A stretch of 64,000 nt of DNA from Diadema antillarum (lineage: Eukaryota). How positions within the stretch are numbered: the stretch's first letter is position 1; each line of letters starts with the position of its first letter. Shown piece by piece: positions 1-60,889 of the stretch. The stretch covers positions 124,001 through 188,000 of the forward strand of contig NW_027271164.1 of NCBI RefSeq assembly GCF_040938485.1. Direction: 5' to 3'. The notes under the pieces were generated by a model. It saw nothing but the letters and a program-made list of their open reading frames with translations, made no database searches and was not told where the DNA came from. The position numbers were made by a program, and so were the translations under genes.

Positions 1-178
1 GTCTTGAGCAGGCAGTTTGTTACATACAATCTCATATTAACCTTTGCTGCAAGAGAGATCAACGAAAGAAAATGGAATCTAATTCATCAAATCCTTCAGA
101 TCAAATTGAAAAATCCTTGAGTCTGTGAGTATGCCAATATAACATGGTATGTTTGTGCTTCTGATCTATATTCTGCAG

Positions 179-435
179 AACCCTTGTTAATACCTTTGCC
201 AGACACTGCCAATGGGATCAGCAAATCCCGGCCCATTTCGACCACATCACCTGATACCATGCACACATATGACAACGCACCCAGGGGTAAGCTTCGCCCC
301 TTGGCTAACCACACCCAGCCGATGGCCACCACACCATCCGCCAGTCTTTCGGGGTCGTTACCGAATGGTCCTCAAATAGAGGAAGATGAGTTTGTGGAGA
401 TCAGTAAACGTGCTAAAGTGTCAGTCAAAGCATGA
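179..435 (+). CDS. Probable terminal coding exon of an unidentified gene entering from upstream
   Basis: Acceptor ...atctatattctgcAG at 177-178, then an open frame (phase 1) PLLIPLPDTANG...EEDEFVEISKRAKVSVKA* ending TGA at 433-435. It is followed by a long T-rich UTR-like tract. No recognisable domain. Confidence 0.4.
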
Positions 436-1416
436 GAGCGATGTTTCCTCCTTCGAGGGACAAGGAATGACTCGTGATGTTATCTTTTTTAGACATCTGA
501 GGCTGGGACAAAACATTGAAGACGGCTCTTTCAAAATAGCACTTGATTGAAGAGACAAAGAATAGTCATGAGATCTAGAGTTGATATTTTGTAGCTACAA
601 AGTCAAATGGACTTTGATAATTCAGAGAAGTTACTGATGTGGAGTCAAGGGATCAAGGGTCACAAATGCATCGACGCTGCACTCCACAGGAAAGCTGTTA
701 GGCAGATGGATGTAGAAGTAGAATGAATCTGCCAGCTCGGCTTCTCGGAGGATCATGCCCGACACAAGCCCCCACTCTTTGTTGGCAAGTTGGTGAACAC
801 CCTTGTCTCATGTTGCAGAATTTGTAGGGAGCAGAGCAGATCGAACAACAATTCTGCATATCTGATTGCCAGCACTCGGTTCACTGTTTGTGGCATGATT
901 CGGCCGGCGTAAGGATACACCAGTCCCATCATGGGTTAGCATTGGTTACTAAAATCATGCAAGTTGTATGTAATCAAGGCATTGATGATGCGCATCCTTC
1001 ACAGCATCGTACCTCGGGTCATGTGTTAAATTTCACATGAAAAGTTTACATAGACCTATTTGGATCTGGTGACGTAGGTTGAAGAATTTATTTTCGTACA
1101 GACCAGTGATGCTATAGGTTTGGATGGTTGATGCTTGAAATTTTTCTTCCATGCATCTATCATCTATTCTCCATCATTGTAGAGCTAGTTAAGTGAGTAT
1201 TTCTTTCATTTAAAAAGGAAAAAAAAAATGCCTGTATGATTTCTTTCATTTACTGCCATTCCAGGAGTGGAATTTAACACATTCCAACAAAGGTCTTCTT
1301 TCTGTTCACAAGTTTACACTTTTAGCAATCTGAAGTTTTGTTAGTTAGAAATAAAGTGACTGCAATTCTGTAGTTTGTAGGAGCTAGCCTGAAATTTGAT
1401 CATGTTCAAATTGTTA

Positions 1417-1648
1417 CTGCTGCAAAAGCTGTTGTTTTTGCGTGCAGATATTTTCGCGAATGAGGAGGTGACCGACATTTTCACAAGATGTCGGTTTCAC
1501 GATTTGACACCGTGACTATCGTAAGTGAACTAATGCCTGTCCATAGATTTAATGCGATCAAGATCAAGTGGTGATATTTTCGTGTGACCTAATAGTGACT
1601 GCGAAATTTGTGAAAATTGAGCCCTCGTGAAAGTAACAGCTTTTACAG
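1417..1648. mobile_element. TA-flanked MITE (CTGTAAAA...TTTTACAG family, probably Tc1/mariner-type)
   Basis: Left TA|CTG(CTG)CAAAAGCTGTT and right AACAGCTTTTACAG|TA form inverted ends. Related copies lie at 9748-9956 and 40891-41095. Confidence 0.6.
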
Positions 1649-2405
1649 TAGCTTTCTAGCTATAAATACCCACATCATTAGAGTGGAGAAGTAGAAGGTA
1701 TTAAACTTTATTGACTCTAGAGAGATAGAGCTCATTACAGGAGAAAATGAGTCACACAAAATGCTTCTTCAGTTTTTCTCTGTTATTAAGAGTTGACTGT
1801 AAGTGGCACAATAGAAGAGGCTTTAATAATCCTTTTTTTTTCAATAGTGCACCAAAGTGATACAGAAACTCACTTAGGCTTTAACTGCATCAATTATACT
1901 TGACAGCTTTGAGATTTCTTATGGTAAACTTTTGACGACACAAGTCTACACAAAACAAATTGATAATAAATATGCAGTGATCGACTTTGAGCATTCATGC
2001 AAACCATTATAGGGATCACCATGATCTACCCATACATCATTATATCCGTCTTCCATACTTGCTTTACTTTGCAATACAAGTACCTCAGCATTCTAGAGTT
2101 TGTCACATGTGGTGTACAGCTTACACATTTTCATATGAATGGGACTGAGTGTGCCATCTGTAGTTTTTCTGACCTGTCAACTGGCTTTCTAGTGCAGAAT
2201 TTCACTCAATCACATGAGGTGAAGGCAGGACTGGAGATAAACATAATAATCATGCAGATATGGAATTTGTATGAGCAAGGCTCTGTGTTTGTTGTCTGAA
2301 GAGTTTGCCAAGGACCAAGACAAAAGAAATAGGATCACATAAACTATAAAACAGAGAGGAAATTCATGAAAGTAAATGCTGTGAGGTATCTAGACTGCCC
2401 TTTAA

Positions 2406-2490
2406 CCCGTTGAAGATGGACTGATTTTGATATAGCATGCATTTCCCATAGACACCTGCCTGAGTATACTCGGGACTCTTCCTCAGCGGG
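2406..2490. mobile_element. 85-bp piggyBac-type mini-MITE
   Basis: TTAA|CCCGTTGAAGA...TCCTCAGCGGG|TTAA. A homologous copy in the opposite orientation lies at 19178-19262. Confidence 0.6.
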
Positions 2491-4131
2491 TTAAGCAGTA
2501 TTGCAAATCACTTCAGTGGGTGTCTGTGTAATTTTCTTCCAGTTGTAAAGGTGCACAAGTCTTGGTACGACATGAGGGAAGCTCCGTGAAATAACTAGAA
2601 ATATGTTCAACCAAAGTGTTGTCCAGCGATTACTGATGTCACTCTTTTAATACCTATGACTAGTTGACAATGGAATGATGTCCAAGCAAATTCCATGAGA
2701 GAAAAAGAAATAATTGAAGAGTCAAAGTTGATAGTGGAAGTTGAGAAAGCTACATTTTTTATATATAAATTATTGATAACATGGTGGCAATGTTCGTAGA
2801 CTTTAGTGTAGTGTTATCAAGCAGGGTTGGCCTACATGTTAAGCTTTATTTCATGTATCAAATATGATGGAAGCTCTCTATCCAAATAACTCTTCTGCAG
2901 TCAGTGTTCATGCTATCTTCTTTCTTGTTTTCTTCATCAGCCTGTATACTTGCCAAGCCACTCCCTATTGTCTATGCCTGCCATATTAATACCTGATCAC
3001 TCTGCTGGTCTAACAGAAGTATGGCATTCACTTTATTTATGCATTTATGTCAGCTTATTGAATGATGAAGTGGCATTTATGAGCTGAAGGTAATTATGGA
3101 AGAGAAGGAGCATGAGATGTAGATGTTAGAGGTCGTCGCATCTGTAGTCACATTGTAGTGGCTGATGACATGATTTTTTTAATATGTAATTGCAAATGTA
3201 TGTAAATACAGGTTTAAAAAATGAAACAGCTGTATGTATGATAATTACTTTTATGTTTTTTTTAATTTACCAAAAATGATATATGTATATATCCATCAAT
3301 TATTGCAATCATGAAAAAGTGAATGTAGATATTGAATGTAGAAGGGTATTTCTGTATATTGTCATGTATATGTATTTTATATACCCTCTAGCACATAAAG
3401 TGTTTTGTGACCATGTACACAACTCATGTAACTAGCAGAAATGCATGACCTCAAGAGCAATTATGTAAATGGCTTAAAATGCCCTCTCCTTTTTGTATTA
3501 ATTTACAGTTTTTGAATGCTTTGATTATGCAATATGGATATAGTACGCTTCCAATATAATTCATTCATTTGAAAATCTGTGTCAACAATTTTATTTGCAG
3601 GCTCTGTTTCTTCCACTTTGCTTTTATTTTGTCTCTGAATGATGGTAAACATTCGAATTTCTATTTTGTCGTGATCACCTTTTTTTTTTTTTGTCCGGTG
3701 GGGGGGCGGGGGGGATCTTAATGTCTCAAATAGCTGTGTTTAATAGATCCAAAAGATTCCTTTTAAGAACAGAACAAACAATTGTGCATGTTATCATACT
3801 TGTCCTCTGCTCTATTCAGACCTCTCAACCTTTCTGACTGAAAAACATAGGGATGATTTGGCTCAAAAGTAGGAAAGAAAGAGCAGTTCCCATAGGAGTG
3901 TGTAGTAAACATACTAAGAAAAATAGGAAACTTTTATTGAAACAAGAATTGGGAAATGTAAAAAATTCACATTCTTTCTTCCAAATTGAGAATAGTTGGG
4001 AGGTCTGTATATTGTGATGTCATCCCCCATACAACCTCAAAATTCCCAAAATGTGCAGGACAAATAGTCAGGTCCAGAGTGAACCAAGCTAGTGGGAGCA
4101 GACTCAGAGAGTTTGTGATTGTTTGAAACAT

Positions 4132-4299
4132 GGGCCCTGTTGCATAAAACCCTTACCGCAGGACTTACCGCTCCCTTCTAGCTGTAAGTCTTCAAATTAG
4201 CGGTAAATTGTATAATCCTTGATGCTGATTGGCTGTGATGCCAAATTTTGACGGTAGTTACCATTGAAATTCAATGGTAGGGTTTTATGCAACGGGCCC
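4132..4299. mobile_element. MITE with GGGCCC termini (PIF/Harbinger-like)
   Basis: TIRs GGGCCCTGTTGCATAAAAC / GTTTTATGCAACGGGCCC. No clean target-site duplication, so the superfamily is tentative. Confidence 0.5.
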
Positions 4300-6100
4300 A
4301 TGGTTTGTAGTTTGCGCTGGGTGAGCCCAACTGTGTAACACCGTAAAATGCATGAAGGTAGTGTGTAGCAGTACTTGACATGGTATGAGAAGTCATTTCA
4401 GGAAGACGTCACTGATTCTTGCATTCAAATTGCCTGTGTCTGTCTGATATTTCACTTGGTACAAATAATTACATCAATACCTCTTCCACCTATGCAGGCT
4501 TAGCATCCAAAGGAATAGAAATAATGAAAGAGGCACTATATATTTACTTTTTATTCTTCTGTCATTTGGTTATCTGAAATACTACACGAGATATCAATAC
4601 ACTGGTTGGAAAACTTTGATGTACATGTGCCTTGATCAGACCTGAATTTGCTAAATTTGATACTTCTTCACTTCATTCTACTCTTTTCGCCTAGAGCAAC
4701 AGTAAAGTTATATGGTAATTTGACGTGATTTTGTAAGATTACAGGGTACTGAGTATTCCATTTATTTTTCTTGTTTGTTTTTTTCAGTATGAGATATGTT
4801 TTCTGAACAAGTCATAAATTAGTTTAACTTAATTTGTGTGTTGTGTTTTTTTTTTAAATTCATATTCTGCAACATGAAGAGTAGATCAAGCTCTCCCAAT
4901 AGACAGAATCTCCCGTTACATTGCATTAATTCAGTACATTTTGTACCATTTATGGATTTTTCACCATATGGAATATCACACTTGTGATTAGGGCAAATAA
5001 ATTTATTGTACTATTGATATATTATTGTTGAGAAAAAGAATTTGAGATACATAAACCATAAAGGAAACACTGAAATCAGGGATTAGGAATATGCGAAAGA
5101 ACGGTTAAACCCTTGCCAGTTTTGTGTAAATACAAGTACTTTAATATGCCATGTTGAAAATGCATCAAAAGATGAAAAAGGGTGTGAACTCTTTTGCCAC
5201 CCTTCTATCCCGTCATGGACATTTTAGAGATTAAAGCAGAAAATCCGTCCCCAGCCACCTTTCTAGCTTATGTAAAGTCAAAGTGAGTGAAATGGATAAT
5301 GTTGCTACCTTACTCTGTGTGCAATGTGTTGATATCATCTCATGTATCAGTTTCCACCAATTATTTTTTGTTTGTAGAATGGCCCAATGTAACCATCATG
5401 TACATAGATCAGTCAAATTGTCCTTGCTCATCAAAATCTGGGTGTGAATGATGTATTGTGCAGAAAAGTGCTCTGGTATTATGGAGGCTAAATCTGTGTG
5501 TAATAAATGACTTGATCTCCTTACCTGTGTAACTCGCAATAGATCTTGAATTCTTTAACATCGATAGATTATGGTTTCTTCTCTGAAAATGTTTCTTGCC
5601 ATGATTTATGTGCTTTTGAATTTTGAGTATGAAATTGTCAATAGAGTCAAATTATAAGACAAAGTAGACTGCCATTGGTTCTTCTTTAGTGACTTCATAA
5701 AGTAAAACGAGCGACTACTTGACAGCAAACTGAATATTCAAAAAGATAAATATGTAATTTGTAACCTTGACTTCCGACTTCCTACGGATAATTTTCTTTT
5801 TAGTACAGGCTGTATCTGTGCTACAAATATTGGCCATTGTTTTGCTTAATTTCCCCTGCCCTCAAGGAAAGAGGGCAACAGCTCTATGAAAAAGCATCGT
5901 TTGCAAAGTAACGAAATCCAAACTTTTTATGTACAGTGTGTATAAATTCCTTGACATGTAATAAAAATGTCAGTATTCCAAAGGATGTCCAGTGTGCTCC
6001 TGTATGCTTTTGTACACACGCATACACACACACACACAAATATATATATATATACAGTGTATATACATGTAATGTATTATATATTATATATTATATATGA

Positions 6101-6537
6101 CATGGCTCGACACTAACTTTTATGTTTGAAGGCCAGATGGGGCCACCAAAATCCAGAATTTCAAATTTTTGGTGGCCCGAGAGAAAAATTTGGTGTCCCA
6201 TAAAAAACCAATAAAAAACATTAAAAGTCCTTTTTTTTAAATGAGTCAAATATTAAAGTTTTATGATAGTAAGAGTTAGAAGTTGGACATATCTACTCAT
6301 AAATAAACTTCAACAAACTTGCAACACTCACTCTCAGGCACTCATTCAGTCCTTTTCATCCATCCTTTTAACAAATTTAACTGCTAATTTCCGGCGCAAA
6401 AAAGTTACGAATTTATTGACATACTTTTCAAAAAATTTTGGTGGCCCGAGGCGGGCCACCAAATTTGCCCTTTTGGGAAATTTGGTAGCCCGACTTTCAT
6501 TTTTGGTGGCCCTGGGCCACCGGGCCGTCGAGCCCTG
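6101..6537. mobile_element. hAT-like MITE
   Basis: Ends CATGGCTCGAC / GTCGAGCCCTG, many subterminal TGGTGGCCC/GGGCCACCA motifs, and a flanking direct repeat TATATGA (6094-6100, 6538-6544). Confidence 0.6.
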
Positions 6538-9500
6538 TATATGATATACATGTATATTTTATATATATATATATATACATTGTATATATATATATATGCT
6601 TATAGTACTACAATATAGAGACACTAGACACTACGGAGAGACCAATTTGTGTTTAAATGTTTTAAACTACTGTACATAATATCCCATTCATACCATGCTT
6701 TACTGCTGACAACGCTCATATACATTTTTCCGTAGTACACGTGTACACTGTCTCCCACATTGTCTCCTGACCTGTATTACATTGTATCATCTTCAATTTT
6801 GTTTTCTGTCATTCTAACAGTACTCTACTTTTTCTCATCTCCCTCCCTCTCTCTCTCGCCCTGTCTCAGTAAACAAAAGATTGCTAGGTGCAAACACTCC
6901 ACTTCACTCGAGGTAGATTGGTTTCATGTACATTCATTTGTATTTCATTACACTGTCAAGGTACGGTACATCGTATTCTGTACAAATGATGTGATGCATC
7001 TTTGCCAGGAAAATATACATGGGGTGCAAAATGAACAAGCAGAGAATTCAGAGTATTGGAAGTACAAGTAAAAAGAAAGAGTTACATAATACCTGGTACA
7101 AATGTACATGACACATGAGTCTGGAGTTGATACTGGGCTGTAACTCATTAATGGAATTAGTCCTATCTTGCCAGATCTTATTAATACATTATACTGTAAC
7201 TTCTTCATTTACCAATCATTCTGCTCATGTAGTTCAGTGGCAACACTGAAGAGGTTACCCTAGATAAAGAAGACATTATTATCATTATTATTATCAGGAG
7301 AGGGGGAGGGGTGCAAATTGTCCTTTTACTGCTAGAATTGATTAATTTGGGGGCTTCATTTGACTGGCTCCAGCTCTGGAGAGGTTCAAGAAAACGGCTC
7401 CAATCTGAAAGGAACTGGCCTTAGATAAAAGCTTCCCCATGTACTCATGACTGTTGTGCCAAGTCAAATCATCTTGTAATGGTGACGAAAAATGACCACA
7501 TATCAATTACTGTGTACGATAAATTGTCATTACAGACACGTCCTTCAAAATATGTGAAATACAATATGTTAGGTGCCTCTGTCGTGCATCCATAATTCAA
7601 CAATCAAAGTTTGGTTCTAAAGAGATCTTGTTTTGCCCTTTCAGCGTGAGATGCGTGACGTGAAAAGCTACATGTCTTCTCTTTGGCTATGGAGCCAAAA
7701 AAGTGATGCTTGAAGGTTGTTTACTTTTTTTTTTTTCTCAGTAGTTTGAACAACATTTGATCAGGCTTAAGACTCATTTGCACAGGAGTGCTCCCCTAAC
7801 TTTAACATTTTAAAAGTGAGCACTGATAATCCAATTTCTTATAAGATTTTTGCCATCTAGTAGTTATGGTGCACTTGGTTTGTACAGAAAACAAGAAACG
7901 AAGTCTCAATTTATGACTGTTTACTACAAGACATGGACCTTCTTTCCATTAAAAGGCAAGACATTTGAATCAGAAGCAAATGTATCAAAAGAACAGGCAA
8001 TTTTGTGTCATAATAGGTAGATGTTTGTACATGTACATGTAATTCTAGTAGAGCTGCAATTAGATGAACTCCATGTAAGAACAATCTCCTGGTTAGGCAG
8101 TTGGGTTGATGCAAAAAAAAAAAAAAAAATTGCAATTCCCAATAAGGAAAATGCAGCTGGTTTAGGCACTACAATTGTCATATCACAGATAGCTGTACAC
8201 ATACTAATCTTTTACAAAGCCTTTGCTGGGCTACTATTTGACATGAAGTCAGTTTGTTGAAAAATGCTGACATGTCATGATATCGGAAACAACATCTAAC
8301 AATGGCTGATGTTTTGACAAGTTGATACTCCACAAGAAATATATCGTGCAGAGTTGCTCATTTTGAGGCCAAATGGCAACACACTTGCTTTTCAGAACCT
8401 TACCTGTCACAAGACATTTCAGTAATCAAGACAGTTTTCTAGCGAATTTGCTCCAAATAAATTCAATTTGTATCGTTTATTCTGTGCCAATCACACAAGC
8501 CTCCTGCACAAAGAATTCTGAATGCTTTGTGTACAGTCTTGTCACTTAGGAATACAGCGAATACATTCCCACACAGCAAAGATAGCAATATTACAAAGTA
8601 TTACAATGACAATGCAATTTCCATCTCATAATATCGTCAAATTTTCAGATTTTTCAACTTTTTTAAAATATTGTAAAAATAGTCCTAAGGTTTATAGGGT
8701 GTTTGTGAGAACAGTTCACTATATCATTCCCATATATTTACTCTGAATAGCCTACATAAACATTCTAAAGTCTCTGTGCTTTCTGCAAAAAACCCACTTA
8801 CAGCTGAAATCCTGTCACTACCAAATCACAGTGATTTTCCCCCTCAAATTCTGGAAGCGCATTTGGAGCCAAGCAACATGTACATTAACATCATTGCATT
8901 ATAAACATAAAGCACAATGTTCCTTCATGACAGCCCTCTACAATGTTTAAAACAGAAAAAAAAAAAATGCTCACTTGGCATCTTGAAGCAATCTGGTTAA
9001 ATCTCACAACACATTCTCCACACTATTGCAGTAAACAGTGTGCAAGTTCCTGATATGTTGAAACCCCATCAGGCATGGACTAACAAGACCTTTGATTTTG
9101 AAACAAAAAGTTAGAAACTTTATGGACCCCTCTACAGGGCATTGACATACTAACTATTCAAGATATGCCAGGTTTGTTTTAGAAAGAAATTTGTGATTAA
9201 CAAGAATCAGAGAGACACAATAAAATTTTGAACCCATCACTGAACATGGCAAAGAACACAATGTGAATATCACACAATCCCATTGCAACTCAATGCAATA
9301 TCTCCACTGGAAATTGAGCAAGTGGCAAATTCAATTCCATTCAATTCCAAATTGTCTGCAGCATAACTACTGAGTAGTCACTAGTCCGTTACTTGAGCTT
9401 TGGATACTTTTGGTAAGGTACTCACAAACTGTACTGACAGCAAGGGGAGGAAATGGCACAGAAAAATAAAGTTGGGAGCGTGAGAGACTTAGAGAGCTAG

Positions 9501-9635
9501 AGAGAAGTAGAGAAGCGATTGAGACTGAGATGATGTGGTTACGGATGACACAGATCTTTACAAAGCCAAGACGGTTAGTGGGCTCCAACAAACACAGTAT
9601 CCCATCATGGTCTGTGGGAGGCTGACTACCCTCCT

Positions 9636-12600
9636 TCAGTCTGAGTCGAGGTCCATGCAGTCGTCACTAAAGGCCTGGTCACCTTGATCGGTTTTAGCTC
9701 TGTGTGTGTAGAAGAATCAAACCCAAATATAGCACATGTCTGGCATACTGTAAAAGTTGATATTTTCGCGCGACTAATTTTTCGCCCTTGGCCGGGTGAG
9801 AAGAGTTTCGCGTGTTTTTAATTCCGCGGAATCAAGACATCACGCACAGGAACATATGGCAGGCAAAAATATTCACATGCTTTTATTTTCGCGCTAGTTT
9901 CTGATTGCGCGAAATGCGCGAAAATTTCAACACCGCGAAAATTTCCACTTTTACAGTAGATGACAGTCATTTTAGAAAATATGCCAACATCTGTCAAATT
10001 TTTGCGTAAATGTATAATAGACAAGGAAATATATGTTCACTAGAGCAAAATCACAAAGCCACTAGACTACAATTCATGTAGTTGTGAATTGAGCCTTAAG
10101 GAATGTTCTCAGGAAAGATGTGCCACTGTACGAGAGAATGAGGTTTGTCAGAATTTTGTTCAGACAATTTGAGGTTGATATCATTTCTGAAACCTGAAAA
10201 TGAGGAGTAACATACAAGCAATATCACCATCAGATCACTGGAATGGTAAACAGGATGGCATATTTGATGACTTAAAGCAATTCCAGATGCATTTTTTTTT
10301 GGGGGGGGGGGGGGAGGGGGGACAATTTGTTCATTTTGCTGAAATACAGCGCTCATGTTTTTACTACTTTCTATTACTTCTTACTTACAGGCTTCCTTCT
10401 CCTGAGATATCACATGCACACATGAAGAACAGCTCAACTTTCAGCCAACAAATATCAAGTACTAGGGACTGCTGAATTTCTCATTGCTTGATTTCCAAAA
10501 GAGCAAAATGTAATATACATGTATTGTGATCGAAAATGCACCTCAAGGCATGTTTACTTTAAGAGTGTAGCAACACCTAGACATATCACTGTCCCATTTC
10601 CATCACAGTTGCATTCATGGAAGACATATCATTGCAATATACAGTCAACCTCGCATACCTCAAATTAGTCGGGACTGAAAATGGTTGATAGTTTTAATTA
10701 GAATCAGTACTCTGCCTATTCATACACCTAGCTCTCAAGTTCATAGAAGTAGGGTGAGGTTGAAGAATTTTGTATCATAAATGTACAGTATTATGACAAA
10801 TAGTCATTGATCACTTGTCAGGCAAGAACTGAAATCAATGAAACCCAAAGGTTGAATTGTACGTTCAAACAACTTTGGTTATCTGCATATATACTTCATA
10901 GGTCTGTTGTTTCATGAATAACCACTTAAAATTACCACATGCGAAGCCATGCCTTACTTTAAGTATGAGACAATAATCATTGATCACTTATCAGGCAAGA
11001 ACTGAAATCAATGAAACCCAAAGGTTGAGTTATATGTTCAAACAACTTTGGGTATCTGCATACATTCTTAATAGGTCTGTTGTTTCACAAAGTCACCACT
11101 ACAAATTATCATACATATAGAGCCATGCCTTTCTTTTAAGTATGAGACAATAATCATTGATCACTTATCAGGCAAGAACTGAAATCAATGAAACCCAAAG
11201 GTTGAGTTGTACGTTCAAACAAGTTTTGGGGCATCTGTTCTTTCATGAAGTCACCACTAAAGCCATGCCTTACTTTAAGTATGAGACAGCAGATTGTACA
11301 ATGAAAACAAACTTTCAACTCTAACATTACAGATTTATATTTTTCTGTCGTATTTAATCGATATGTCAGTACACTGAAAGGTGTATAGTAATGGAAGGGA
11401 AGTCATAAAAAAGGTTGTTTGATTTTAAGAACAGAACAGGTTTTGCACGATCAGTACCTAGATAACTTCAGTAATAGGAATGAAACATTTAGAAGTTCGT
11501 CGGAAACATGCTTAACAGCGAAGTGTCACTGATGGTTTTTATAATTACTCATGAGATACAACTCATAATTCTCCACAAGCAATTGCAGCTCAGCTGGTGT
11601 TTGCTGAAAGATGTCAAACTGTCTGATCACGTTGAGAGCTTGACACACTTCACTGATCGAAGGTGGTGTGCGCACACAATCCTCCCCCTGTTGGCTACTG
11701 GTTTCACCATTACTGTTCTCGTCATCGCTCTCGCCGTCTTCTTTGACTCCTGTGATTTCAACAATCTGGTCATCCGTTAAGAGATTGACACCTGTGTCAG
11801 TTGCATCCACGTCTACATATTCGTCCATGGCAGGTAGCGGGAAGAGGTCGGCCAACCTCTCCCAGATGCCGCGAAATTGTTGTGCATCATCAACACCTCC
11901 CTCTTCACCGCGATCTCCATCTTCCTCTACTTGCTCACACAGAAGAGCAAGTCCCACATTCCTGTATACATGAGCTATTGTCTGTTGGGACACCCTGTTC
12001 CATGCCGTCTTCAAAGCGATGATAGCATCAAGAAGGTCCCATTTGAAGGGAACTCCCCCATCTGCCGCTGCAAGTCGTCTGAATGCCAGGATGTGCCGAT
12101 AGTGTTGTTTCAAATTTCTGATGACACCACCATCCACTGGCTGGGTCAAGCTGGTAGTATTTGGTGGCAGAAACACAAGTTTAATGTTCTCCAGCTTAAT
12201 ATGAGGATGAGCCGGACAGTTATTGATGACCATAGCAATCTTTCTCCCTTCCATTTTGCCATCAAGTTTCCTCAGCCATTCCTCAAACAATGCCCCTGTC
12301 ATCCAGGCCTTCTTGTTGGCTTTGTAGGCAACTGGCAGATTTTTCACGTTCTTAAATGCGGGTGGTCGCTTGCTCTTCCCGACGACAAAGAGGGGGAGTT
12401 TGTTGCTGCCATCCATATTAGCGCACACTAGAACAGTGACACGTGTATTCTGCTGTTTACCTCCATGGAAGGTAGTGCCAAGAAAACGGAGCGACTTCTC
12501 GGGTAACACTTGCCAAAATAAACCAGTTTCATCAGCAATGTAGATATCCTTCGGGTCATAACGCCTCAGAATATCTGTCAGCTTTCCATCTTTCCAGCCT

Positions 12601-15600
12601 TGGATAAGCTCTTCATCCACCCCAGCAGATTCTCCAGCCTCTTTGATGTAGCCTATTCCATATCGTTTCTTGAAACGACTTACCCAGCTCAGTGAAGGAG
12701 CTGTCTCGTGACCAAATTCTTTGGCAAAGTATTTGGCTTTTTCAAGCAGCATCTCCCCATCTAGCCGGAGATCAGGCAGAGATTCCTTTTGCCGAAACCA
12801 CGTGATCAAAGCCGCATCCACATTGTCGAATGCCATCTGCCTCATTCTCTTGATGCCCTTCCGTGCATCACATGGATTTTCAACTGCTTGCACAATTTTG
12901 TGGCGTTTTTTTATCACGCCCGACAGTGTATTGGTCTTCACATTAAACTTTGCCGCAACATCTTTTTTCTTCCATGTTGGATTTTCATCCATGAAAGTGA
13001 GGATTGAGTATTTTTCCTGATACGATTTTACGTTCAATTTTCGCTTCGTTGCCATGCTTGAAAGTGATAGACGTGCTGCTCTCTTCGACCTACAGAAGGA
13101 TAATGGCAGAGAGGTCTATTGCCAGGAGTTTGTACCCAGTTTTCTTCACAATTTGGACATTGAAGTTATGCAATTCACATTCTTGCTATTCGCGGCGGAC
13201 GTCTATTTTCATTTAGGGGCATGTGGGGTCGATGGGCAACTTTGTATCAATTGTTCCAAGAGGTACTGAGCGAGCTTGACTACTGTAGTACCTCCTTGAG
13301 TGCTCTTAGTATACATTGAATTTTGCATTATTACAAGTTAAATATGGCATATAGAATATCATCATGCTAACTGGAATTTGATGGCTTTCTCAGCGAAGAA
13401 GTTACTCCAGATATTTGCCTGAAAAATCTTACAGCGTATCCTTCTGTAACATCGAAATTTATCTGAATAAACTGTTGTTAAATCATATCTATTCTTTATT
13501 ATGCTTGGCCTACTTCCAGATCATGTACCACAAAAAGAGTATTCAGTGCTTATGTTCTCGGCGGAGAATAATAATGAAACAAACCTCATGAAACAAAAAA
13601 GTTAAAAAAGCACTATGCAGGAGATTGATATTTGGACAGCATAACTGTCAACAACTAAGCAGGTGCACCACGACAGTTGAGAAATCTCTGCCCATGGCAT
13701 GACTATAACAATCACAAATCAGAACACAGTGGTTAAAGAAAAGAAGTTGATGGGGCAGAGCGCAGTGCTTCTGTAAGCACTCCATTGGCATGGGTGCTAT
13801 GTGCATACCGTGTACGCGTGTAGGTAGGTGTGGGGGATTTTTCTTGCCAGCTGTGTATTGCTTTGGGCCCACGATCGTTCTGGTCTCTAAATATTTACAA
13901 TCAAGTGTGGAAAGATTTATGACATGTCTTCGCTGTCTACGCGCGCTTAATTGGGGGGAGATGCTGAGTGATGTTTGCATTTCGCTTCGAGCAACACGCT
14001 GGGAAAAACAATAAGTTAATTAAGATTGGGACATTAGACTTCCCTCTGAGGTAACGAAACTTTGTATAAGTTTTTCGAGCTATGCGAGTCGTAACACACA
14101 GAAACTCCAAACGAAAAATCTGGTAAGTGATATTTGGCTTATCCGACATCGAGGTTAGCGAGGTTGACTGTATGTTTACAACTACACGTACATAAAAAAC
14201 TTGAGCTCATTCCATAAAATGTGAAAAAAAAAATCAAATTGCTAACTACAAAGCTGAACACATACTTGGAAAGTTACAAAAGCAAAGCAATTTAATCATT
14301 TAGAAGCATAGTGCACATCTTACTATTATGCAGATGTGTACCTTCTTAGCTAAGAGCTGATTATATATTTCTGCAGACAATACAGGTATTGACACTTTTC
14401 TGAGAAAGAAGTCTATCCATGATAACTGCAAAGAGCACATCGGAGAAATTTCTGAACAGTCCAAATGAAATCTGAGACTCACCTGTGAGTTCCCTGTTCT
14501 CCATCTGATATATCCATGTCATCAATGGGCCGAGCCATTCCTGGTGGTCCTGGAGGCTGCTGCTGCTGTCCCATAGGTTGGTAGGAGGACCCCAGCACCG
14601 GAATCCTCTGAATGTCTGCGGGGAGATTGGCACTGGAGCCCAATGTGGGGATGCGCTGGCCGACCGGAGGAGCAGGGTTGGGCTGGCTTGACGACTGCTG
14701 ACGGTACGCCTTTCCATACTCTGGAGGTATATCATCATCATCGATGCCATCATCCTCATCCTCCTCGGGGCCTTGTCCTGTGGCTGTCCCATACTCAGGT
14801 GGAATGATATTGAAGCCACCTCTGTAAGCCTGTCCATACTCTGTGGGAACTTCTCTGCTCTCCCTTGGCCTCCAAGCTGCCCTTCCATACTCCACTGAAG
14901 CATCCTTGGCCTCCCTCCTGTGAGCTCGGCCATACTCTTGGGGAACTGGAGCGTGAGACTGGGAGACTCTGTGCCCGGACGATGCCGACGAGGACTCCGA
15001 TTGTGAGCCACCCCATCTTGAGCTCTGAGGCTGCCTGCTGTGCCTGCTGCTGGATGAGGATTCTGGCGGTGGGGGAGGGGTGCGAGGACCCTTCCTGTGC
15101 CTACTCTGTTTAATTCCCTCAAAACCTTGACGTGACTGTAGAAGTGACCTTGCCCGTTCAAACCAATCCTCACCCAACCTGGATTCCTCCTCTTCCTCCT
15201 CCTCCTCCTCTTCTTCTTCAGGTTCTGGCGTTGCTGCTTTTGTTTCTTTCACCTCCTCCTTAGATTGTTCTTCCTTTTTGTGGACATCTTCAGGATTATT
15301 GAGCACCACACTATCACCATCACTGTCTGGAGTGGCTAGTGCCATATCTGCTTCCCCTTGGTCTTCTTCCTCTTCCTCCTCCTGCTCCTCACTTTTAGGC
15401 TCATCATCTAGCCTCATCAGTCCTTCCTCTGCAGCTCGTTTCAGTAGATCCTTGGTGACACTGGACCCAGCAAAGAGGTCCGCTCCCATGAGCCCGCCCT
15501 CCGGTGACCCGCTCCCCTCTTCCGGTGTCTGGCTTCTCTCAGTGACCACATTCTCTTTATCTGGAATGTCTTGATCCTCTTTAATAACACCATCATCAGT

Positions 15601-39300: not shown

Positions 39301-41586
39301 CACAAGTGAAGTAAAGGTCAGTTTGATAGAATGGAATTTGACTGACACTAATGTAAAAGATTTTCTGTACCCAATGTATGATAGCTTTATAAAATGAGTG
39401 ATAATAATAGAAGTTGTGCTGAATTCATATGTCCAGTAATTGATTTATCAGCAGAAGGTTCACTTAGCAACTGTGTGTTTAAAAATAGAACCAGAACCAG
39501 ATTAAAGTCATCTCATTTAAGGCGGATAAGGTGGATTATAATGTGTTGAAGTACTTTGACTTTTCTGATATAAAATAAATTGACATCATGATATCAATTT
39601 CCAACACTTCAGGTTAGATTTTCAGGAGCAGGGCAGAGCATTTCAACTTGTACCTGAACCTAGCAATTACCAATATCCTTCCCATTGATGTGTTGGACCG
39701 ATGTTTCACTTGTTGAAAGATTTAGTCATGCATTCATTGATTCCTTTTCAATTTTATTAATTTTTTTATCCTATAATGTTACAGAAAGACTGTCTCAAGT
39801 TGGGGTGGTGGCTGATTCTTGTACCAAGGGCATAAGTGACGTCTTGGAGCAGAAGCTGAGAAGGAAGAGGCTAAATTTCAAGCTAAAATGTCCCTCATTG
39901 TCCAACCTTCCAGATGATACCAATGCCATCATTATCATCAAGGTGAGTTGGTTTACTTCGTTTTTGGATATCTCAGCCATTTTAAAACCGATTTTCCTCA
40001 AATAAACTTTCAATTCCTGTTCAAATGGTATGCTCTTTTCACATTTCATAAAGTGGTTTCTAAGTACACGTGTATCTCACAAAAAGTTAAAAGCTGAATC
40101 ACCATCTCAACTAGTTCTATACCATCCCTTTAATACTGTACATGTGTACTGTGTGCTGCGGAATACACAGAGCTCTCATAGAACTCATAGCTAGCAACTA
40201 GCACACAGTACTGCCCATATTTACTGTGCAGCAAAGACTGACTGCAAATAAATATCTTTGCAGAATTCAGTCGGTGCTCAGTAAGAGTGGACCTTAAGTT
40301 TTCATAAACTGTTCGCAATAATCTCGATGGGATCCAATCTTAATAAATCACAACAATGACAGCTATATGGCAAAAGCCAGTTATCATTCAAAATGTGTAG
40401 TTACTACCATGGTAGTTGCATTCATAATTGTCTACTGCATTTAAACAGCTGACAGGAATATCCAATGTTGACTAAAAGTTTTTCGTGTCAAAAACATTTT
40501 TTTATATAAAACTTTCGAATCAGAATATTTTAGAAAGAATGTTTGAGAGAACAGGAGTTTTAAGTGAAATTGTTGCTTGAAAAGTAAGTTTTTCATCTTC
40601 CTTTCAGCATCAAGTAACTGATGCCTTCTTTGCGGAATGTGCAGGAGAACTCCGGGAAGCTCTACAAAGGGTGAGGAGGACTTCTGCACCCATCAGAGGA
40701 TGCGTCGTGCTGTATGTTGCCATGGTAACGGATGAACCCATGGCAGGAGCAAGCAGCATAATGACAGGCGTCAGGGAGTTTGGTGCAGAGGAAGGCGCAA
40801 AGGATGTCTGTCTGCACTGTGTCATTGAAAGCAAGGTGTGTATGATGCTTGGCAGTGTCACTTTGTGATGTCTTCTCGAATTTACTCATACTATAAAACA
40901 TAATATTTTTGTGGCATGAAATTTTCATGAATTGAAGCCGACAGCTGTTTTTATGGTATGAAATTTTCGCGAGTTGCCTCTAACATTCAATGCATATAGT
41001 GTAGACAAGAACTTTCGTGTGCATTTTAATTTCGCGAATCTTGGCTTGCGAAATTCTCGAAATTAAAATGCACGCGAACGTTCCTCGTTTTACAGTACTT
41101 TGTACTGATAGCAAAGTCTCTTTGGAACCCTTTCCGTATGCATTTATATGCGACAGCTCCTAACTGACCTATCTGCACTTCCATGCCCAAATCTTCATCA
41201 TCATCATCAAGATACTGTTTTTTAAAGTTTATATATGCAAAATGTACCAAAAAAGTAGAAAAACACAGCAAATATATACCAATTGTGATTCTATGCTAGT
41301 GTTAGAGTTGAGAGTCACTTTTTACAGGTGTACAGTATCCAGGTTAACACCTAAACTGAATCTGCTCATTTGATATCTCTTGGCTGCATTTTGTGTATGT
41401 TTTGTGACAAGATGTCGACTGTCGTAGTCTTAATTGCCTGTATCCTCATCTCAGATCCTTCTCTTCCCCCTACAGACCGTCAATGGGCCACTAGAGATGG
41501 AAAAGACGGACAAGGCGTGTCAACTGACCGCAGACCTCGTTCTCAGAAGAGATGAACTTGTCACTGGCCAAACATTCATTTTCTAG
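35568..41586 (+). CDS. CRPPA: D-ribitol-5-phosphate cytidylyltransferase (CRPPA/ISPD), 401 aa, 8 coding exons
   Basis: Exons: 35568-35698, 36818-37094, 37829-37978, 38569-38673, 39155-39200, 39785-39942, 40608-40835, 41476-41586 (1206 nt, GT-AG, phases consistent). Motifs [54 protein letters not shown], plus the animal-type C-terminal domain ending ...VTGQTFIF*. Confidence 0.92.
36339..36372 (+). repeat. Poly-G tract (34 nt) in a CRPPA intron
   Basis: Direct count. Confidence 0.85.
39961..40129. mobile_element. Solo arm of a TTAA-ended (Kolobok-like) foldback element
   Basis: TTTTGGATATCTCAGCCATTT...ACCATCCCT|TTAA is homologous to the right arm of 60391-60771. Confidence 0.55.
40891..41095. 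mobile_element. TA-flanked MITE (CT(A/G)TAAAAC...GTTTTACAG)
   Basis: TA|CTATAAAAC ... GTTTTACAG|TA with internal AATTTTCGCG repeats. Related to 9748-9956. Confidence 0.6.
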
Positions 41587-48185: not shown

Positions 48186-50700
48186 TCACTCATCATACAA
48201 ATTGTATGCCTGAAGAGGAAGATAACTCCTCAATTCATTCTGCTGAAGAAGGAAATACTCTTGTGGAAATTTAGGCAAAACCTCATATGCATAAACATGA
48301 TCATCAAAGCCCTGTGTTTCCCAGACTGTTCCATACAAATTAAATTGGCTTCCAACACAGTAAGCAGCTATCACCTTTCCAAAAGTAGGCATGCAATCAT
48401 GTGCACCAATGGCAACACTCATGCCTGATCTGTACTCTGTGCCAGATAGAGTCAAACTCTTTCTTACCATTACTTCATCATCTCTACACAGAGTTGGGAA
48501 TTTCTCAAGTAGTAGGGCACATCCCTCATCCAGTTTCTCGGACAGGCTTCTTATCAACATGCTGTACTACAGGCTTCTGTTCAACTCCATGTGTGAACCA
48601 TCTATGACATTGACTGATTTGCTGTCTTTCAGCGATTGTTTGTGCAATGTCCTTAAAATTACAGACAACATTCGCCATACGTTTGCCAATGGCATGCTTT
48701 GCTTCATACCTCATACACCAAGAGTTAATGAGAGGGCCAACTTGCTTGCACATGAAGGGGTAGTGGACGAGAAAATGATGCTTTGGTTTGAGATTATGTC
48801 CTGGAAGTAATCTCTTGAATAGAGTATGGTGGTCCTCAATGTGGCAACGCAAGTGAGCAATCATTTTGTCAGTTATCTCCCTAGCAAATGCAATGTCCAT
48901 TACATGTCTGAGGCGAATCAGCAGTTCCCAATGCGGATTGCCTCTGGGAACTTTATCACCAATCAAAATTGGTAAACATCGCAAGAGGCACCACATCTGC
49001 GATGCAGTATTCTTGAAGTTACATGTACTATCATCGTTCTGTAAGGTACTTGCATTGATTACTGATGGTTTGTTTTTGATATCAACAAAACCATAAGAGA
49101 AGTTAGACAATCTCTCATTCAACAGATTGAGTGTGAACAAATTTTCTACTTAGATTAGATGATTGAGGATCAATTTGCACTCCACTTTTCCAACACCTTC
49201 AAGAATATCATGCATGATATCCGGAGAAGAGTTTCTTGTGATATGAAAATACTTTGATTTGTTTAAGATACATTCACTCTTTACTCCATGATCAGAGACT
49301 GACTGCGGATTGTGCATAACAGATTGCACATGTATTGCATGGTTTTCTGGATTTCTCTTTTCACACTAGTCATCTACTAAGCAAAATTGCATATCTGGTC
49401 TTGATGTCATACAGGCTCTACATGGATAGTTTGCACCAAAACTTTCTACAAAACCACCTAAAGTGTTAGCACCTAAGTTGTCGGCTGCTGCTTGAATCAA
49501 TGTACCTCTTTTCCTCACGACTCCATGACTGAGTGTTAATTCCATTCCCTCGTTAGATTCCAATTCAGCCAACTCCTCCATAAATGGTTCAAGTATGGAG
49601 TTAAATCCATACTTGACACGATCCAAGCTATGAAACAAGCCAAGCAAATGTATATGAGGTAGAGTAGAATTCAGTCTTGAAGGGATGTTTTGCAATGTGT
49701 AATACAAAGCTCCTAACTTACGCACTCCTCGCTTTGATCCAATTGGATTTGTTACCTCAAAAAGTCATCAAAAAATAATGAAATTTGCAGGGCATCTGGA
49801 CATACTTCAAATAGCGGATGTGATCTAAACTGCGTACCATCACAGTAGTATCTCTTCACACCGTCAGTTGAAGGAGAAATTGTAGCCATATCTGCTACTA
49901 CTTTAGGATTATTCAGGACTACTCCAAGTGTTTCCTTTAATGACACATACTGAAAGGTATCTTGCACAAGGACTTGCCTGGAAAGGCCAGTAGATTTACC
50001 CACTCTAGTGTCAAAACGATTTCCCAGAACAACTGTCCTGGGTTTAATCAATCCAAGTTCCTCTTGAAAATACTGCTCTTGTTGATAGCGAGATTGCAAT
50101 GTAGAAAATGGTTTCTTAGTATCATGAAAAGATGCAGTCAATGCTTGGTATGCAGGTGAACATGGGTCTACATCCAATGTTTGTAAGAAATCTGCAGTCT
50201 TGTGCTCTAAGGAAGTAGCTATTGTCATCAGTTAAAGACGACGATTGTTCGACAACTCTATGGACAGTAGCATAGGTTACGTTAGGTTGCGAGAGTAAAG
50301 CAGTGATGAAAAGTGCAGCCCGTTTCTGAAGCTGTAAATCAGCACCTCTTTCAAGATCTTCATCAGCATCATTTTCTTTTACTGCATTGTTTTCTTCATA
50401 TACAGCATCATCATACACATGATGTACATGTATGTCAGCATGCTCTTGGTTACCTTCATGATCATTTTGAGGATTGCCAGGAATCAACTGGTCAGCTTCA
50501 TTATTCCCATGTGTATTCAATAAATGTTTCCTGAGTGAATTGAATGTGAAGAAAGTTTGAGGGCATCCTCCTTGACCACACTGTAGAATTAGTCCTGGTT
50601 CATCAAAGAGTGCATAGGCACAATGCAGATGTGAGAAAAGCTTCAATAGTCCATGTAAAATCAAATTGCAGACAAAACACTTAAAAAATCCATTATCCAG
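48186..50700 (-). pseudogene. EnSpm/CACTA (CMC) transposase pseudogene with N-terminal C2H2 zinc fingers
   Basis: Collinear motifs: CFVC..HLH and CGQGGC..HLLNTH zinc fingers, LFFDDF[frameshift]EVTNPIGS, LGALYYTLQNIP, ADNLGANTLGGFVESF..YPCRAC, PDIMHDILEG, ASQMWCLLR, LKPKHHFLVHYP, WCMRYEAKH. At least 3 frameshifts and 2 in-frame stops. Confidence 0.82.
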
Positions 50701-51074
50701 GATAGCTATGAGGTGCAACACTAGAGAGCATGCACACCACCTACATGTAAATAAAGTATGGCATATCTTGATCATGAGGTATTGCACTTGTAAATGCATA
50801 AAGCATTTGTGTGTACATGCATGTGTTCACAAGTATAAAATTGGCAAAACTGCGTAGAAGACTAGCAGTATAATGAATGTACAATGAGTGCTCTAATATA
50901 TCCAATAGGAGGCCTCTTGCAACTCGACATTTAGCTTGTGGAAAATCAAAATTGTATATTAGGAGGAACAGATAGTGAAACTGAATAAACCAAATTCTAA
51001 AATCCTCTTTAAAGGCAATGTACTGAATAATACCTTTTAAGCTTTCACACCGCGTGATCTGACGTGGATTTTAA

Positions 51075-54694: not shown

Positions 54695-54907
54695 NNNNNN
54701 NNNNNNNNNNNNNNNNNNNNNNNNNNNNNNNNNNNNNNNNNNNNNNNNNNNNNNNNNNNNNNNNNNNNNNNNNNNNNNNNNNNNNNNNNNNNNNNNNNNN
54801 NNNNNNNNNNNNNNNNNNNNNNNNNNNNNNNNNNNNNNNNNNNNNNNNNNNNNNNNNNNNNNNNNNNNNNNNNNNNNNNNNNNNNNNNNNNNNNNNNNNN
54901 NNNNNNN
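54695..54907. other. Assembly gap (213 N)
   Basis: N run. Confidence 0.99.
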
Positions 54908-57923: not shown

Positions 57924-58089
57924 NNNNNNNNNNNNNNNNNNNNNNNNNNNNNNNNNNNNNNNNNNNNNNNNNNNNNNNNNNNNNNNNNNNNNNNNNNNNN
58001 NNNNNNNNNNNNNNNNNNNNNNNNNNNNNNNNNNNNNNNNNNNNNNNNNNNNNNNNNNNNNNNNNNNNNNNNNNNNNNNNNNNNNNNNN
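57924..58089. other. Assembly gap (166 N)
   Basis: N run. Confidence 0.99.
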
Positions 58090-58682: not shown

Positions 58683-58830
58683 NNNNNNNNNNNNNNNNNN
58701 NNNNNNNNNNNNNNNNNNNNNNNNNNNNNNNNNNNNNNNNNNNNNNNNNNNNNNNNNNNNNNNNNNNNNNNNNNNNNNNNNNNNNNNNNNNNNNNNNNNN
58801 NNNNNNNNNNNNNNNNNNNNNNNNNNNNNN
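58683..58830. other. Assembly gap (148 N)
   Basis: N run. Confidence 0.99.
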
Positions 58831-59844: not shown

Positions 59845-60390
59845 TACCAACAACAGAAATAGGCCTGTCAATGTATTCTACAGTATTTGTGTACTAGCTG
59901 TTTATCTGTTAAAATATGCCATACATGGTGTCTGTGTATATCTACTGTCTGTGCAGGCTTGTATGTTCATGTTATGTGAATCCATCATACCTTTTCTCAG
60001 ATTGCAATGCACACCCTGTACTTATCATCAAGCTACACTGATAACGGAAACAATACTACAGCTTTGGAGAGACATATGTTGTTTACGTACTTCGGAACTT
60101 ATTTCAATTGAGTCTGAGGTTGAAGGAAATGTTGTTTGTTGTTCACCTCCATTCGAGGCCTCTTGTCAGTGACATCTTTGCAATTTCCTGATAAGTGGTA
60201 CCTGCTGCTGACGCTGGTGAACAATTACTCACATCCCATAGAATCGTTTCACTCACCAGCATTTCACCATATTGCTACACAAGCTGTGCTCTCTATGTAA
60301 ATCTTTCTTAGAAATAAGACAGGAAGTGTGTAATTCATTGCAGTAATGCCATGGTTGTCCATCACTAAAATTGTTTTCCTTAATCGATTT

Positions 60391-60771
60391 GTACAGTTCT
60401 GGATGAGGTGAGGATTTAGCTTTCAACGTTTTGAGAGATGTTCAGAAACCACTCTATAAGATGTCAAAGAGCATGCCATTTTAAAGGGTATCGAAACTTT
60501 ATTTGGTGAAAATCGATTTTGAAATCGCCAAGATATCCAAAAACAAGGTGAAACAAAGATATCCTAAAAAAGGGCGTGGCCTGTCGCCTTTTATTATTTA
60601 ATATCACTTTTTTGGATATCTCAGCCATTTGAAAACCAATTTTCACTAAATAAACATTAAATTTCTCTTAAAATTACATGCTCTTTCATATTTCATAAGA
60701 GATTTTTCATTATCTCACTTAGGAATGTTCAAAACATGAATCCCCACCTCAACCAGTACTGTACAGTCCCT
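60391..60771. mobile_element. Kolobok-like foldback element with a truncated left end
   Basis: Imperfect ~160-bp inverted arms (GTACAGTTCTGGATGAGGTGAGGATT versus revcomp GTACAGTACTGGTTGAGGTGGGGATT) and right end GTCCCT|TTAA. Confidence 0.6.
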
Positions 60772-60889
60772 TTAATCGATTTTAGAATTTGCTTATGAGA
60801 GATTACAGAAGAAATACCATGCAGGAGAGTGTGATCAAGAACTGAAAATAGAAGATTTTAATAACTGGATGCATGGACTAAAAACTGGT

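Follow-up and report, generated by a model that had tools for sequence, protein, structure and literature searches.

The window analysed in this work, a stretch of 64,000 nucleotides (nt) from the urchin Diadema antillarum (assembly GCA_040938485.1, contig JBFRCO010000276.1), carries a pogo-type DNA transposon in the last intron of a gene related to HDGFL2 and PSIP1. The transposon contains an open reading frame (ORF) of 509 codons for a transposase, and an earlier sequence-only reading had proposed that this ORF is joined by splicing to the host transcript, giving a fusion protein of 1699 amino acids (aa). According to our analysis, the locus is an ordinary intronic transposon-derived ORF. 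The reading that we favour, with a probability of about one half, is that of a nested transposon-derived ORF that would have been retained in the intron, and whose chimeric splicing with the host gene would yield a minor isoform at most.

The insertion was found at the same site and with the same flanks in the window, in a second D. antillarum contig (L005) and in D. setosum (L001); these three are called locus A below. In all of them NCBI annotates the transposase ORF as a separate nested gene, the three products having 408 aa (start at M102), 488 aa (M22) and 439 aa (M71). No product of 1699 aa is annotated at any of the three loci, for which the look-up recorded the longest product per gene; the longest host product has 1199 aa at the allelic D. 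antillarum locus and 1198 aa in D. setosum. The annotation argues against an abundant fusion isoform, and the isoform proposed by the sequence-only reading received no support from it. Protein searches with host exon 15, among them a HMMER scan of 1.84 billion cluster representatives and, for the 180 C-terminal residues of the exon, a search among candidates of 99–315 aa, returned no Diadema protein fragment across the end of this exon, which is weak evidence. With the transposase as the query (candidates of 280–890 aa) no fusion protein was found either; this is again weak evidence, as these lengths excluded the 1699-aa product. The fusion may be kept as a reasonable prediction only, and we lean slightly against chimeric transcripts being detectable at any level.

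The ORF itself presents signs of conservation. It is open for 509 codons in the three copies of locus A with zero indels, against 13 indel events across 2,818 aligned bp of the non-coding sequence next to it (Poisson P = 0.0009; 0.04 when the 5′ side is taken alone). The window and D. setosum ORFs differ at 21 positions, 10 synonymous and 11 non-synonymous, and the ratio of non-synonymous to synonymous rates (dN/dS) is 0.30 by NG86 and 0.41 by YN00. Both interspecies comparisons gave values of 0.27–0.30, and the comparison between the two D. antillarum haplotigs gave 0.11. In neutral simulations a mean of 15.3 out of 21 changes was non-synonymous, and 11 or fewer occurred with P = 0.03 at kappa 3.3 (range 0.03–0.05). 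The non-synonymous changes cluster at residues 389–509, while the first 388 codons carry three, together with seven synonymous ones. These data are moderate evidence that the open frame of locus A is being kept. As a control, a paralogous copy of the element that overlaps no gene (copy B) showed a dN/dS of 0.28 over 86 differences; therefore, constraint on these ORFs needs no host fusion. The ORF of locus A is probably a transposon-derived gene at an early stage of retention.

The transposon and its copies

The element and its parts are listed below, in window coordinates.

10642..14170, minus strand: pogo-superfamily DNA transposon (TIGD4-like, Tigger/pogoR-type), 3,529 bp, sense to the host gene, delimited by terminal inverted repeats (TIRs), TA duplication and paralogue alignment
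14145..14170, minus strand: 5′ TIR, 26 nt, 88% complementary, starting CAGTCAACCTCGC
10642..10667, minus strand: 3′ TIR, 26 nt
13206..13588, minus strand: 383-bp segment in the 5′ untranslated part of the element, present at this locus only and absent from paralogues B and C
11526..13055, minus strand: transposase ORF, 509 aa, with the Pfam domains CENP-B_N (residues 4–56), HTH_Tnp_Tc5 (77–136) and DDE_1 (204–363)
12222..12224, minus strand: codon 278, AAT for Asn in place of the second catalytic Asp; paralogues B and C have GAT here, and the remaining relatives all have Asp
11353..11358, minus strand: ATTAAA polyadenylation-signal hexamer, 168 nt past the stop codon
10792..11226, minus strand: 173-bp tandem repeat, 2.5 copies, in the 3′ part of the element

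The two TIRs match at 23 of 26 positions and have a TA on either side (14171–14172 and 10640–10641), which represents the target-site duplication. The ends were confirmed by two paralogous copies, L002 and L003, whose alignments run from 14172/14173 to 10640/10632. Together with the domains of the ORF, which exceed the curated Pfam cut-offs with 24.5, 35.3 and 147.8 bits for CENP-B_N, HTH_Tnp_Tc5 and DDE_1, respectively, these features bear out the sequence-only reading that a co-oriented pogo element lies in the last host intron. As to the name Tigger used there, the NCBI label for the relatives is TIGD4-like, and TIGD4 derives from the pogoR family and not from Tigger proper (Gao et al. 2020, PMC7386202).

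The catalytic triad falls on D175, N278 and D308, with a spacing of 30 between the last two. As N278 is common to all three copies of locus A, an intact DDD triad (spacing 29–36) is absent from them, and the earlier description of the transposase as catalytically impaired agrees with this substitution of an Asp kept by every relative. The ORF also ends some 13–16 residues early in relation to paralogues that continue with QTTITDYF. By descent the element belongs to the pogo superfamily, but it is not active. A conserved FRGIW segment with acidic residues before it (residues 394–400, 11856–11876, minus strand) resembles but does not match the FxGF motif, by which partners such as POGZ bind the IBD of LEDGF/HRP-2 (PMC11740969, PMC11910589); this is a resemblance only.

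Within locus A, L005 is 97% identical to the window over 20.6 kb and probably represents the other D. antillarum haplotype. The search for further genomic copies, suggested by the sequence-only reading, revealed them at non-homologous loci: copy B is intergenic (L003, L007 and L008) and copy C (L002) is located within an RNF216-like gene, on the strand opposite to the gene. The two have 91–92% DNA identity to the locus-A ORF, and no near-identical copy occurs elsewhere. Copy B (L003 4910–10022; L007 and L008 around 5863–7446) occupies an orthologous locus in the two species; its D. antillarum version retains the DDD triad and the C-terminal tail, but the D. setosum version is shifted in frame by 2 nt at nt 274. 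In the ORF tree copy C is the outgroup to A and B, and the split between A and B predates that of the species. An ancient nested gene common to other urchins was considered and rejected, as the relative in Lytechinus variegatus, with 65% identity, lies clear of every gene called at its locus.

Elsewhere in the window, five successive long stop-free stretches (126–234 codons, in shifting frames) extend over about 2.6 kb at 48189–50826 on the minus strand. A Pfam scan of the long open frames at 48–51 kb gave no match, and these stretches could be the decayed remains of a large ORF that belonged to an unclassified mobile element. Runs of N occur at 54695–54907, 57924–58089 and 58683–58830, all distant from the transposon locus.

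The host gene and the splice sites around the insertion

The host exons and the splice-related features are the following.

14483..15966, minus strand: host exon 15, a large acidic low-complexity coding exon of the PWWP and IBD gene, defined by its open frame and donor; the 5′ boundary is putative
9636..9699, minus strand: coding part of the canonical last exon, with the acceptor CACACAG/A (9700/9699; the slash marks the splice site here and below), 21 residues and then the stop
13090..13112, minus strand: pyrimidine tract and AG acceptor (TGTAG/G), with AG at 13091–13090; the trapped exon would start at 13089
13056..13089, minus strand: 34-nt linker, open when joined to exon 15 and identical in all three copies of the locus
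12678..12686, minus strand: donor-like TGG/GTAAGT after codon 124, at a phase-0 codon boundary, at this locus only

Pfam searches per exon matched PWWP in exon 1 (E = 1.6e-4) and the LEDGF IBD in two exons (E = 1.8e-3 and 7.4e-6), which cover profile positions 22–54 and 79–118. Two of these matches stay under the whole-domain cut-off and the third misses it by 0.3 bit, since the domains are distributed across exons. By its domains the host gene belongs to the HDGF-related PWWP and IBD family (HDGFL2/PSIP1-like), as the sequence-only reading had it. Compared with human HDGFL2 (HRP-2) and PSIP1 (LEDGF/p75), the Diadema protein has 1199 aa and a long acidic C-terminal exon that is not in the human proteins.

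Exon 15 presents a single open frame of 495 codons (15966–14482) that ends in GGA ACT CAC AG/GTGAGT. These codons set the frame and the last exon base is 14483; the donor is therefore phase 2, and the insertion site lies in the last, phase-2 intron of the host. In a rough consensus matrix, from which all splice-site scores given here are approximate values, this donor is the best of the region (8.6). The host coding part of 3536 nt, joined to the 61 coding nt of the last exon, amounts to 3 × 1199, and 1199 aa is the length of the NCBI product at the allelic D. antillarum locus. With the junction Arg, which occurs in both host products, the last exon accounts for 21 residues, and not for the 20 that were said to be replaced.

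On the contig of the window, NCBI splits the host into two genes of 664 and 356 aa (22752–16979 and 15489–9636; 1–5774 and 7264–13117 in L006, which is base-for-base identical to window positions 1527–22752). The 356-aa model uses the canonical junction from 14483 to 9699. The 664-aa model stops near 16979, between the two IBD exons, and would give a product without a complete IBD, which we take to be reminiscent of LEDGF p52. About 90 nt upstream of exon 15 (window position ~16055), D. setosum carries a repeat of ~385 bp (L001 6420–6800), with relatives of 70–88% identity at window 60390–60777 and 39948–40135 and also in L002. A trans-species polymorphism of this repeat was ruled out, since it is confined to D. 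setosum.

The acceptor lies 34 nt (1 + 33) upstream of the transposase ATG (13055) and ranks second among the 288 AG sites of the last intron. It scores 6.2, compared with 1.9 at the canonical last-exon acceptor and 0.5–5.6 at three other host acceptors. Other fair acceptors between the donor and this site are found at 14426, 14400 and 13999. The junction reads AG+G TCG AAG AGA GCA GCA CGT CTA TCA CTT TCA AGC ATG with no stop, and the nearest in-frame stop upstream of the acceptor is at 13118–13116. In these respects the geometry described by the sequence-only reading was correct: the phase-2 donor at 14483, the strong acceptor before the ATG, the open junction, the 3536 nt of host coding sequence and the ATTAAA at 11358–11353 were all recovered.

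The acceptor dinucleotide is AG in the D. antillarum copy B, AC in the D. setosum copy B and TG in copy C. A gain specific to locus A, suggested by a first alignment in which the paralogues had TG or AC, was rejected, as the D. antillarum copy B has AG. Because C is the outgroup to A and B and the D. antillarum B has AG, the AG represents the ancestral state; together with the tract it is kept within the transposon family, and it was lost by single changes in two copies. Since the acceptor came with the transposon, the coincidence at this locus is reduced to sense orientation and intron phase, about 1 in 6. The caveat of the sequence-only reading, that the acceptor may belong to the element itself, proved right as to its origin. 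Its use as the 3′ end of an intron in the element’s own 5′ untranslated region was rejected, as there is no good donor between the 5′ TIR and the acceptor (the best score 2.4 and 2.1, against 8.6 for the host donor).

The donor-like TGG/GTAAGT is the second-best donor of the region. It was made by three clustered substitutions, from ATA GAT to GTA AGT (I125V and D126S), where copies B and C read TGG ATA GAT and residue 126 is Asp or Glu in all relatives. A cassette exon from 13089 to 12684 would have 406 nt, and the last exon would then read AGC TAA. In the predicted product the host protein and the linker would be followed by transposase residues 1–124 only, with CENP-B_N and most of HTH_Tnp_Tc5; a host protein joined to a DNA-binding region is the commonest architecture among known fusions (bioRxiv 10.1101/2020.05.07.082677). 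We estimate the chance of such a substitution cluster anywhere in the ORF as ~0.2, and this locus-specific donor is a lead only.

The low-divergence block around the element

8001..15300, no strand assigned: block of low D. antillarum/D. setosum divergence, 7.3 kb, centred on the element

The three-way alignment revealed that fixed interspecies differences amount to 1.7% per site in this block and to 8.8% in its flanks (21000–16001 and 8000–2001), that is, the block is about five times less diverged. Polymorphism between the D. antillarum haplotigs only halves, from 2.2% in the flanks to 1.1% in the block. The contrast between fixed and polymorphic differences is significant in an HKA-like Fisher test (P = 3e-9; 9e-4 without one divergent tract). 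The ORF presents a synonymous rate (dS) of 0.031 at locus A versus 0.14 at copy B, and in the ORF tree the two species join at a depth three to five times smaller in A than in B. As the reduction extends to synonymous sites, the low divergence is not accounted for by constraint alone. The divergence of the flanks agrees with the published dS of bindin, 0.105–0.118, for a split 12–14 million years ago (PMC7299941).

D. setosum is known to hybridise in nature with relatives of D. antillarum. Later gene flow of the element-bearing haplotype, which these comparisons suggest, would be the simplest reading of the block; a sweep of that haplotype across the species boundary is suggested as an alternative to plain gene flow. 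Given the recent shared ancestry, the presence of the insertion in two species dates it less firmly than it appears. In the intron tract downstream of the element (10201–10400 and 10001–10200), 23 differences are private to the second D. antillarum haplotig, and over this tract the window is 2.1% from D. setosum versus 6.5% from the other haplotype of its own species. Independently of the fusion, the block is useful as a possible example of gene flow between lineages of Diadema.

Competing explanations and relation to known fusions

In the order of events that we favour, a pogo-type transposon landed at a TA of the last, phase-2 intron of the Diadema HDGFL2/PSIP1-like gene, in the orientation of the gene, and carried with it an acceptor-like site located 34 nt before its ATG. 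With an element-borne acceptor and a phase-2 intron, an in-frame exon-trap configuration arises automatically. The element is now immobile: the second catalytic Asp has changed to Asn, and a small deletion took the C-terminal tail. Its ORF has been kept open in three copies and two species, with signs of mild purifying selection. Expression would occur mainly as a nested unit, as NCBI annotates it and as must be the case for the intergenic paralogue B, with splicing from exon 15 into the element presumably as a minor isoform at most. Three observations weigh against this reading. The trap acceptor out-scores the canonical last-exon acceptor 3.4 kb further on, so some chimeric splicing is expected. 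The three annotated starts differ though M1 is intact in every copy, and therefore the nested gene models may rest on little evidence. Finally, the polarisable changes on the stem branch leading to copy A are 25 non-synonymous and 8 synonymous, a neutral ratio.

That last ratio is what would be expected of a neutral relic, a dead copy decaying in the intron whose ORF stayed open through shortness of time and whose low dN/dS is a sampling fluctuation. The TIRs and the TA duplication are intact, which by the criterion of Gao et al. 2020 (PMC7386202), under which a domesticated pogo gene has neither, makes the element a transposon and not a domesticated gene; its catalytic Asp is gone and its C-terminus was cut by the deletion. 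With an ORF divergence of 1.4% between the two species, the simulated probability of finding no stop under neutrality is 0.45, and the dN/dS test reaches only P = 0.03–0.05. On the other hand, the lack of indels in the ORF as against those in 2.8 kb of flanking non-coding sequence of the same block, the low dN/dS in each comparison and the concentration of non-synonymous changes in the C-terminal residues count against free decay, and we consider a relic rather unlikely. The early domestication put forward by the sequence-only reading gains a mild lean from the shared insertion, the intact ORF and the interspecies dN/dS; the retained TIRs count against it, and the equal constraint on the unfused paralogue shows that the signal is not tied to the fused arrangement.

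A genuine host-transposase fusion would require that the exon-15 donor be spliced to the transposon acceptor, that the transcript end at the polyadenylation signal of the element and that the 1699-aa product be under selection. The predicted protein would consist of the PWWP, the IBD, the acidic region, a 12-residue linker and the inactive transposase, with a variant formed through the TGG/GTAAGT donor. All structural prerequisites are present, a sense transposon in a host intron with an in-frame upstream acceptor, and insertion into a host gene with transposon-supplied splice sites is a documented route (bioRxiv 10.1101/2020.05.07.082677). The loss of a catalytic residue while the DNA-binding region is kept is parallel to POGK (PMC7386202). 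The ORF has a dN/dS of 0.30 (P ~0.03, two species) and no indels, the clustered substitutions gave this locus alone a consensus donor within its DNA-binding region, and the element-bearing haplotype has an unusually recent common ancestry across two species. This same recent ancestry, however, limits what the dN/dS can say, and the unfused paralogue B has the same value. Neither the annotation of the three loci nor the protein collections searched contain a fusion or a junction-spanning fragment; the acceptor was inherited, not selected here, and was lost in two paralogous copies; other decent acceptors lie between it and the donor; and the donor cluster is not improbable by chance. We therefore regard such a fusion as unlikely. 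Less probable still would be a very young echinoderm fusion of an H3K36-methyl-reading tether and a dead transposase (the 1699-aa form or the cassette), carried by an advantageous haplotype that spread across the 12–14-million-year boundary; this we consider very doubtful.

The retained nested ORF can be compared with three groups of known systems. KRABINER (ZNF112-mariner), SETMAR and CSB-PGBD3 (Cosby et al., bioRxiv 10.1101/2020.05.07.082677) also involve a DNA transposon in sense in a host intron; for KRABINER this is a mariner, and the intron is again the last one of its gene, ZNF112. In fusions of this type, as here, the ancestral transposon supplies an acceptor just upstream of the transposase ORF, and the parental transcript is expected beside the fusion. 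They are documented by transcripts and conservation, whereas the Diadema locus is known from its sequence and a public annotation without fusion; moreover, the partner is a PWWP and IBD chromatin tether in an echinoderm, while in tetrapods it is of the KRAB, SET or SWI/SNF type.

The vertebrate pogo-derived genes (TIGD1-7, JRK, POGK, POGZ and CENPB; PMC7386202) share with the Diadema ORF the set of CENP-B_N, HTH_Tnp_Tc5 and DDE_1 domains, and triad substitutions are common and dN/dS is below 1 among them as here. POGK, which is fused to KRAB, has a DN35D triad (PMC7386202), a substitution at the same position as N278. These genes lost their TIRs and duplications, and their conservation spans tens to hundreds of millions of years, with Ka/Ks of 0.06–0.21 (PMC7386202), whereas the Diadema copy keeps the TIRs and TA, is found in one genus, and has a dN/dS of 0.30 derived from 21 differences. 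With autonomous transposons of the pogo/Tigger type it shares the TA duplication, short TIRs starting with CAGT, a single ORF with two helix-turn-helix motifs and DDE_1, the 30-residue spacing of the last two triad positions, and copies at unrelated loci of the same genomes. It differs from them in the Asn at the second catalytic position, in the loss of the C-terminal tail and in that its closest paralogue has 91–92% DNA identity.

If there is no fusion, the locus joins the many intronic copies of transposons that have a conserved ORF; if the fusion is real, it adds to the host-transposase fusions already known. The host partner is of interest, since the human LEDGF/HRP-2 family tethers integrases and both HDGFL2 and PSIP1 bind the pogo-derived POGZ via the same IBD (PMC7835958). 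Should a chimeric transcript exist and be under selection, the locus would represent a host-transposase fusion near its birth in an invertebrate deuterostome. As the TIRs and the target-site duplication persist there, alongside the parental isoform and paralogues that are not fused, the steps proposed for vertebrate fusions would become directly testable.

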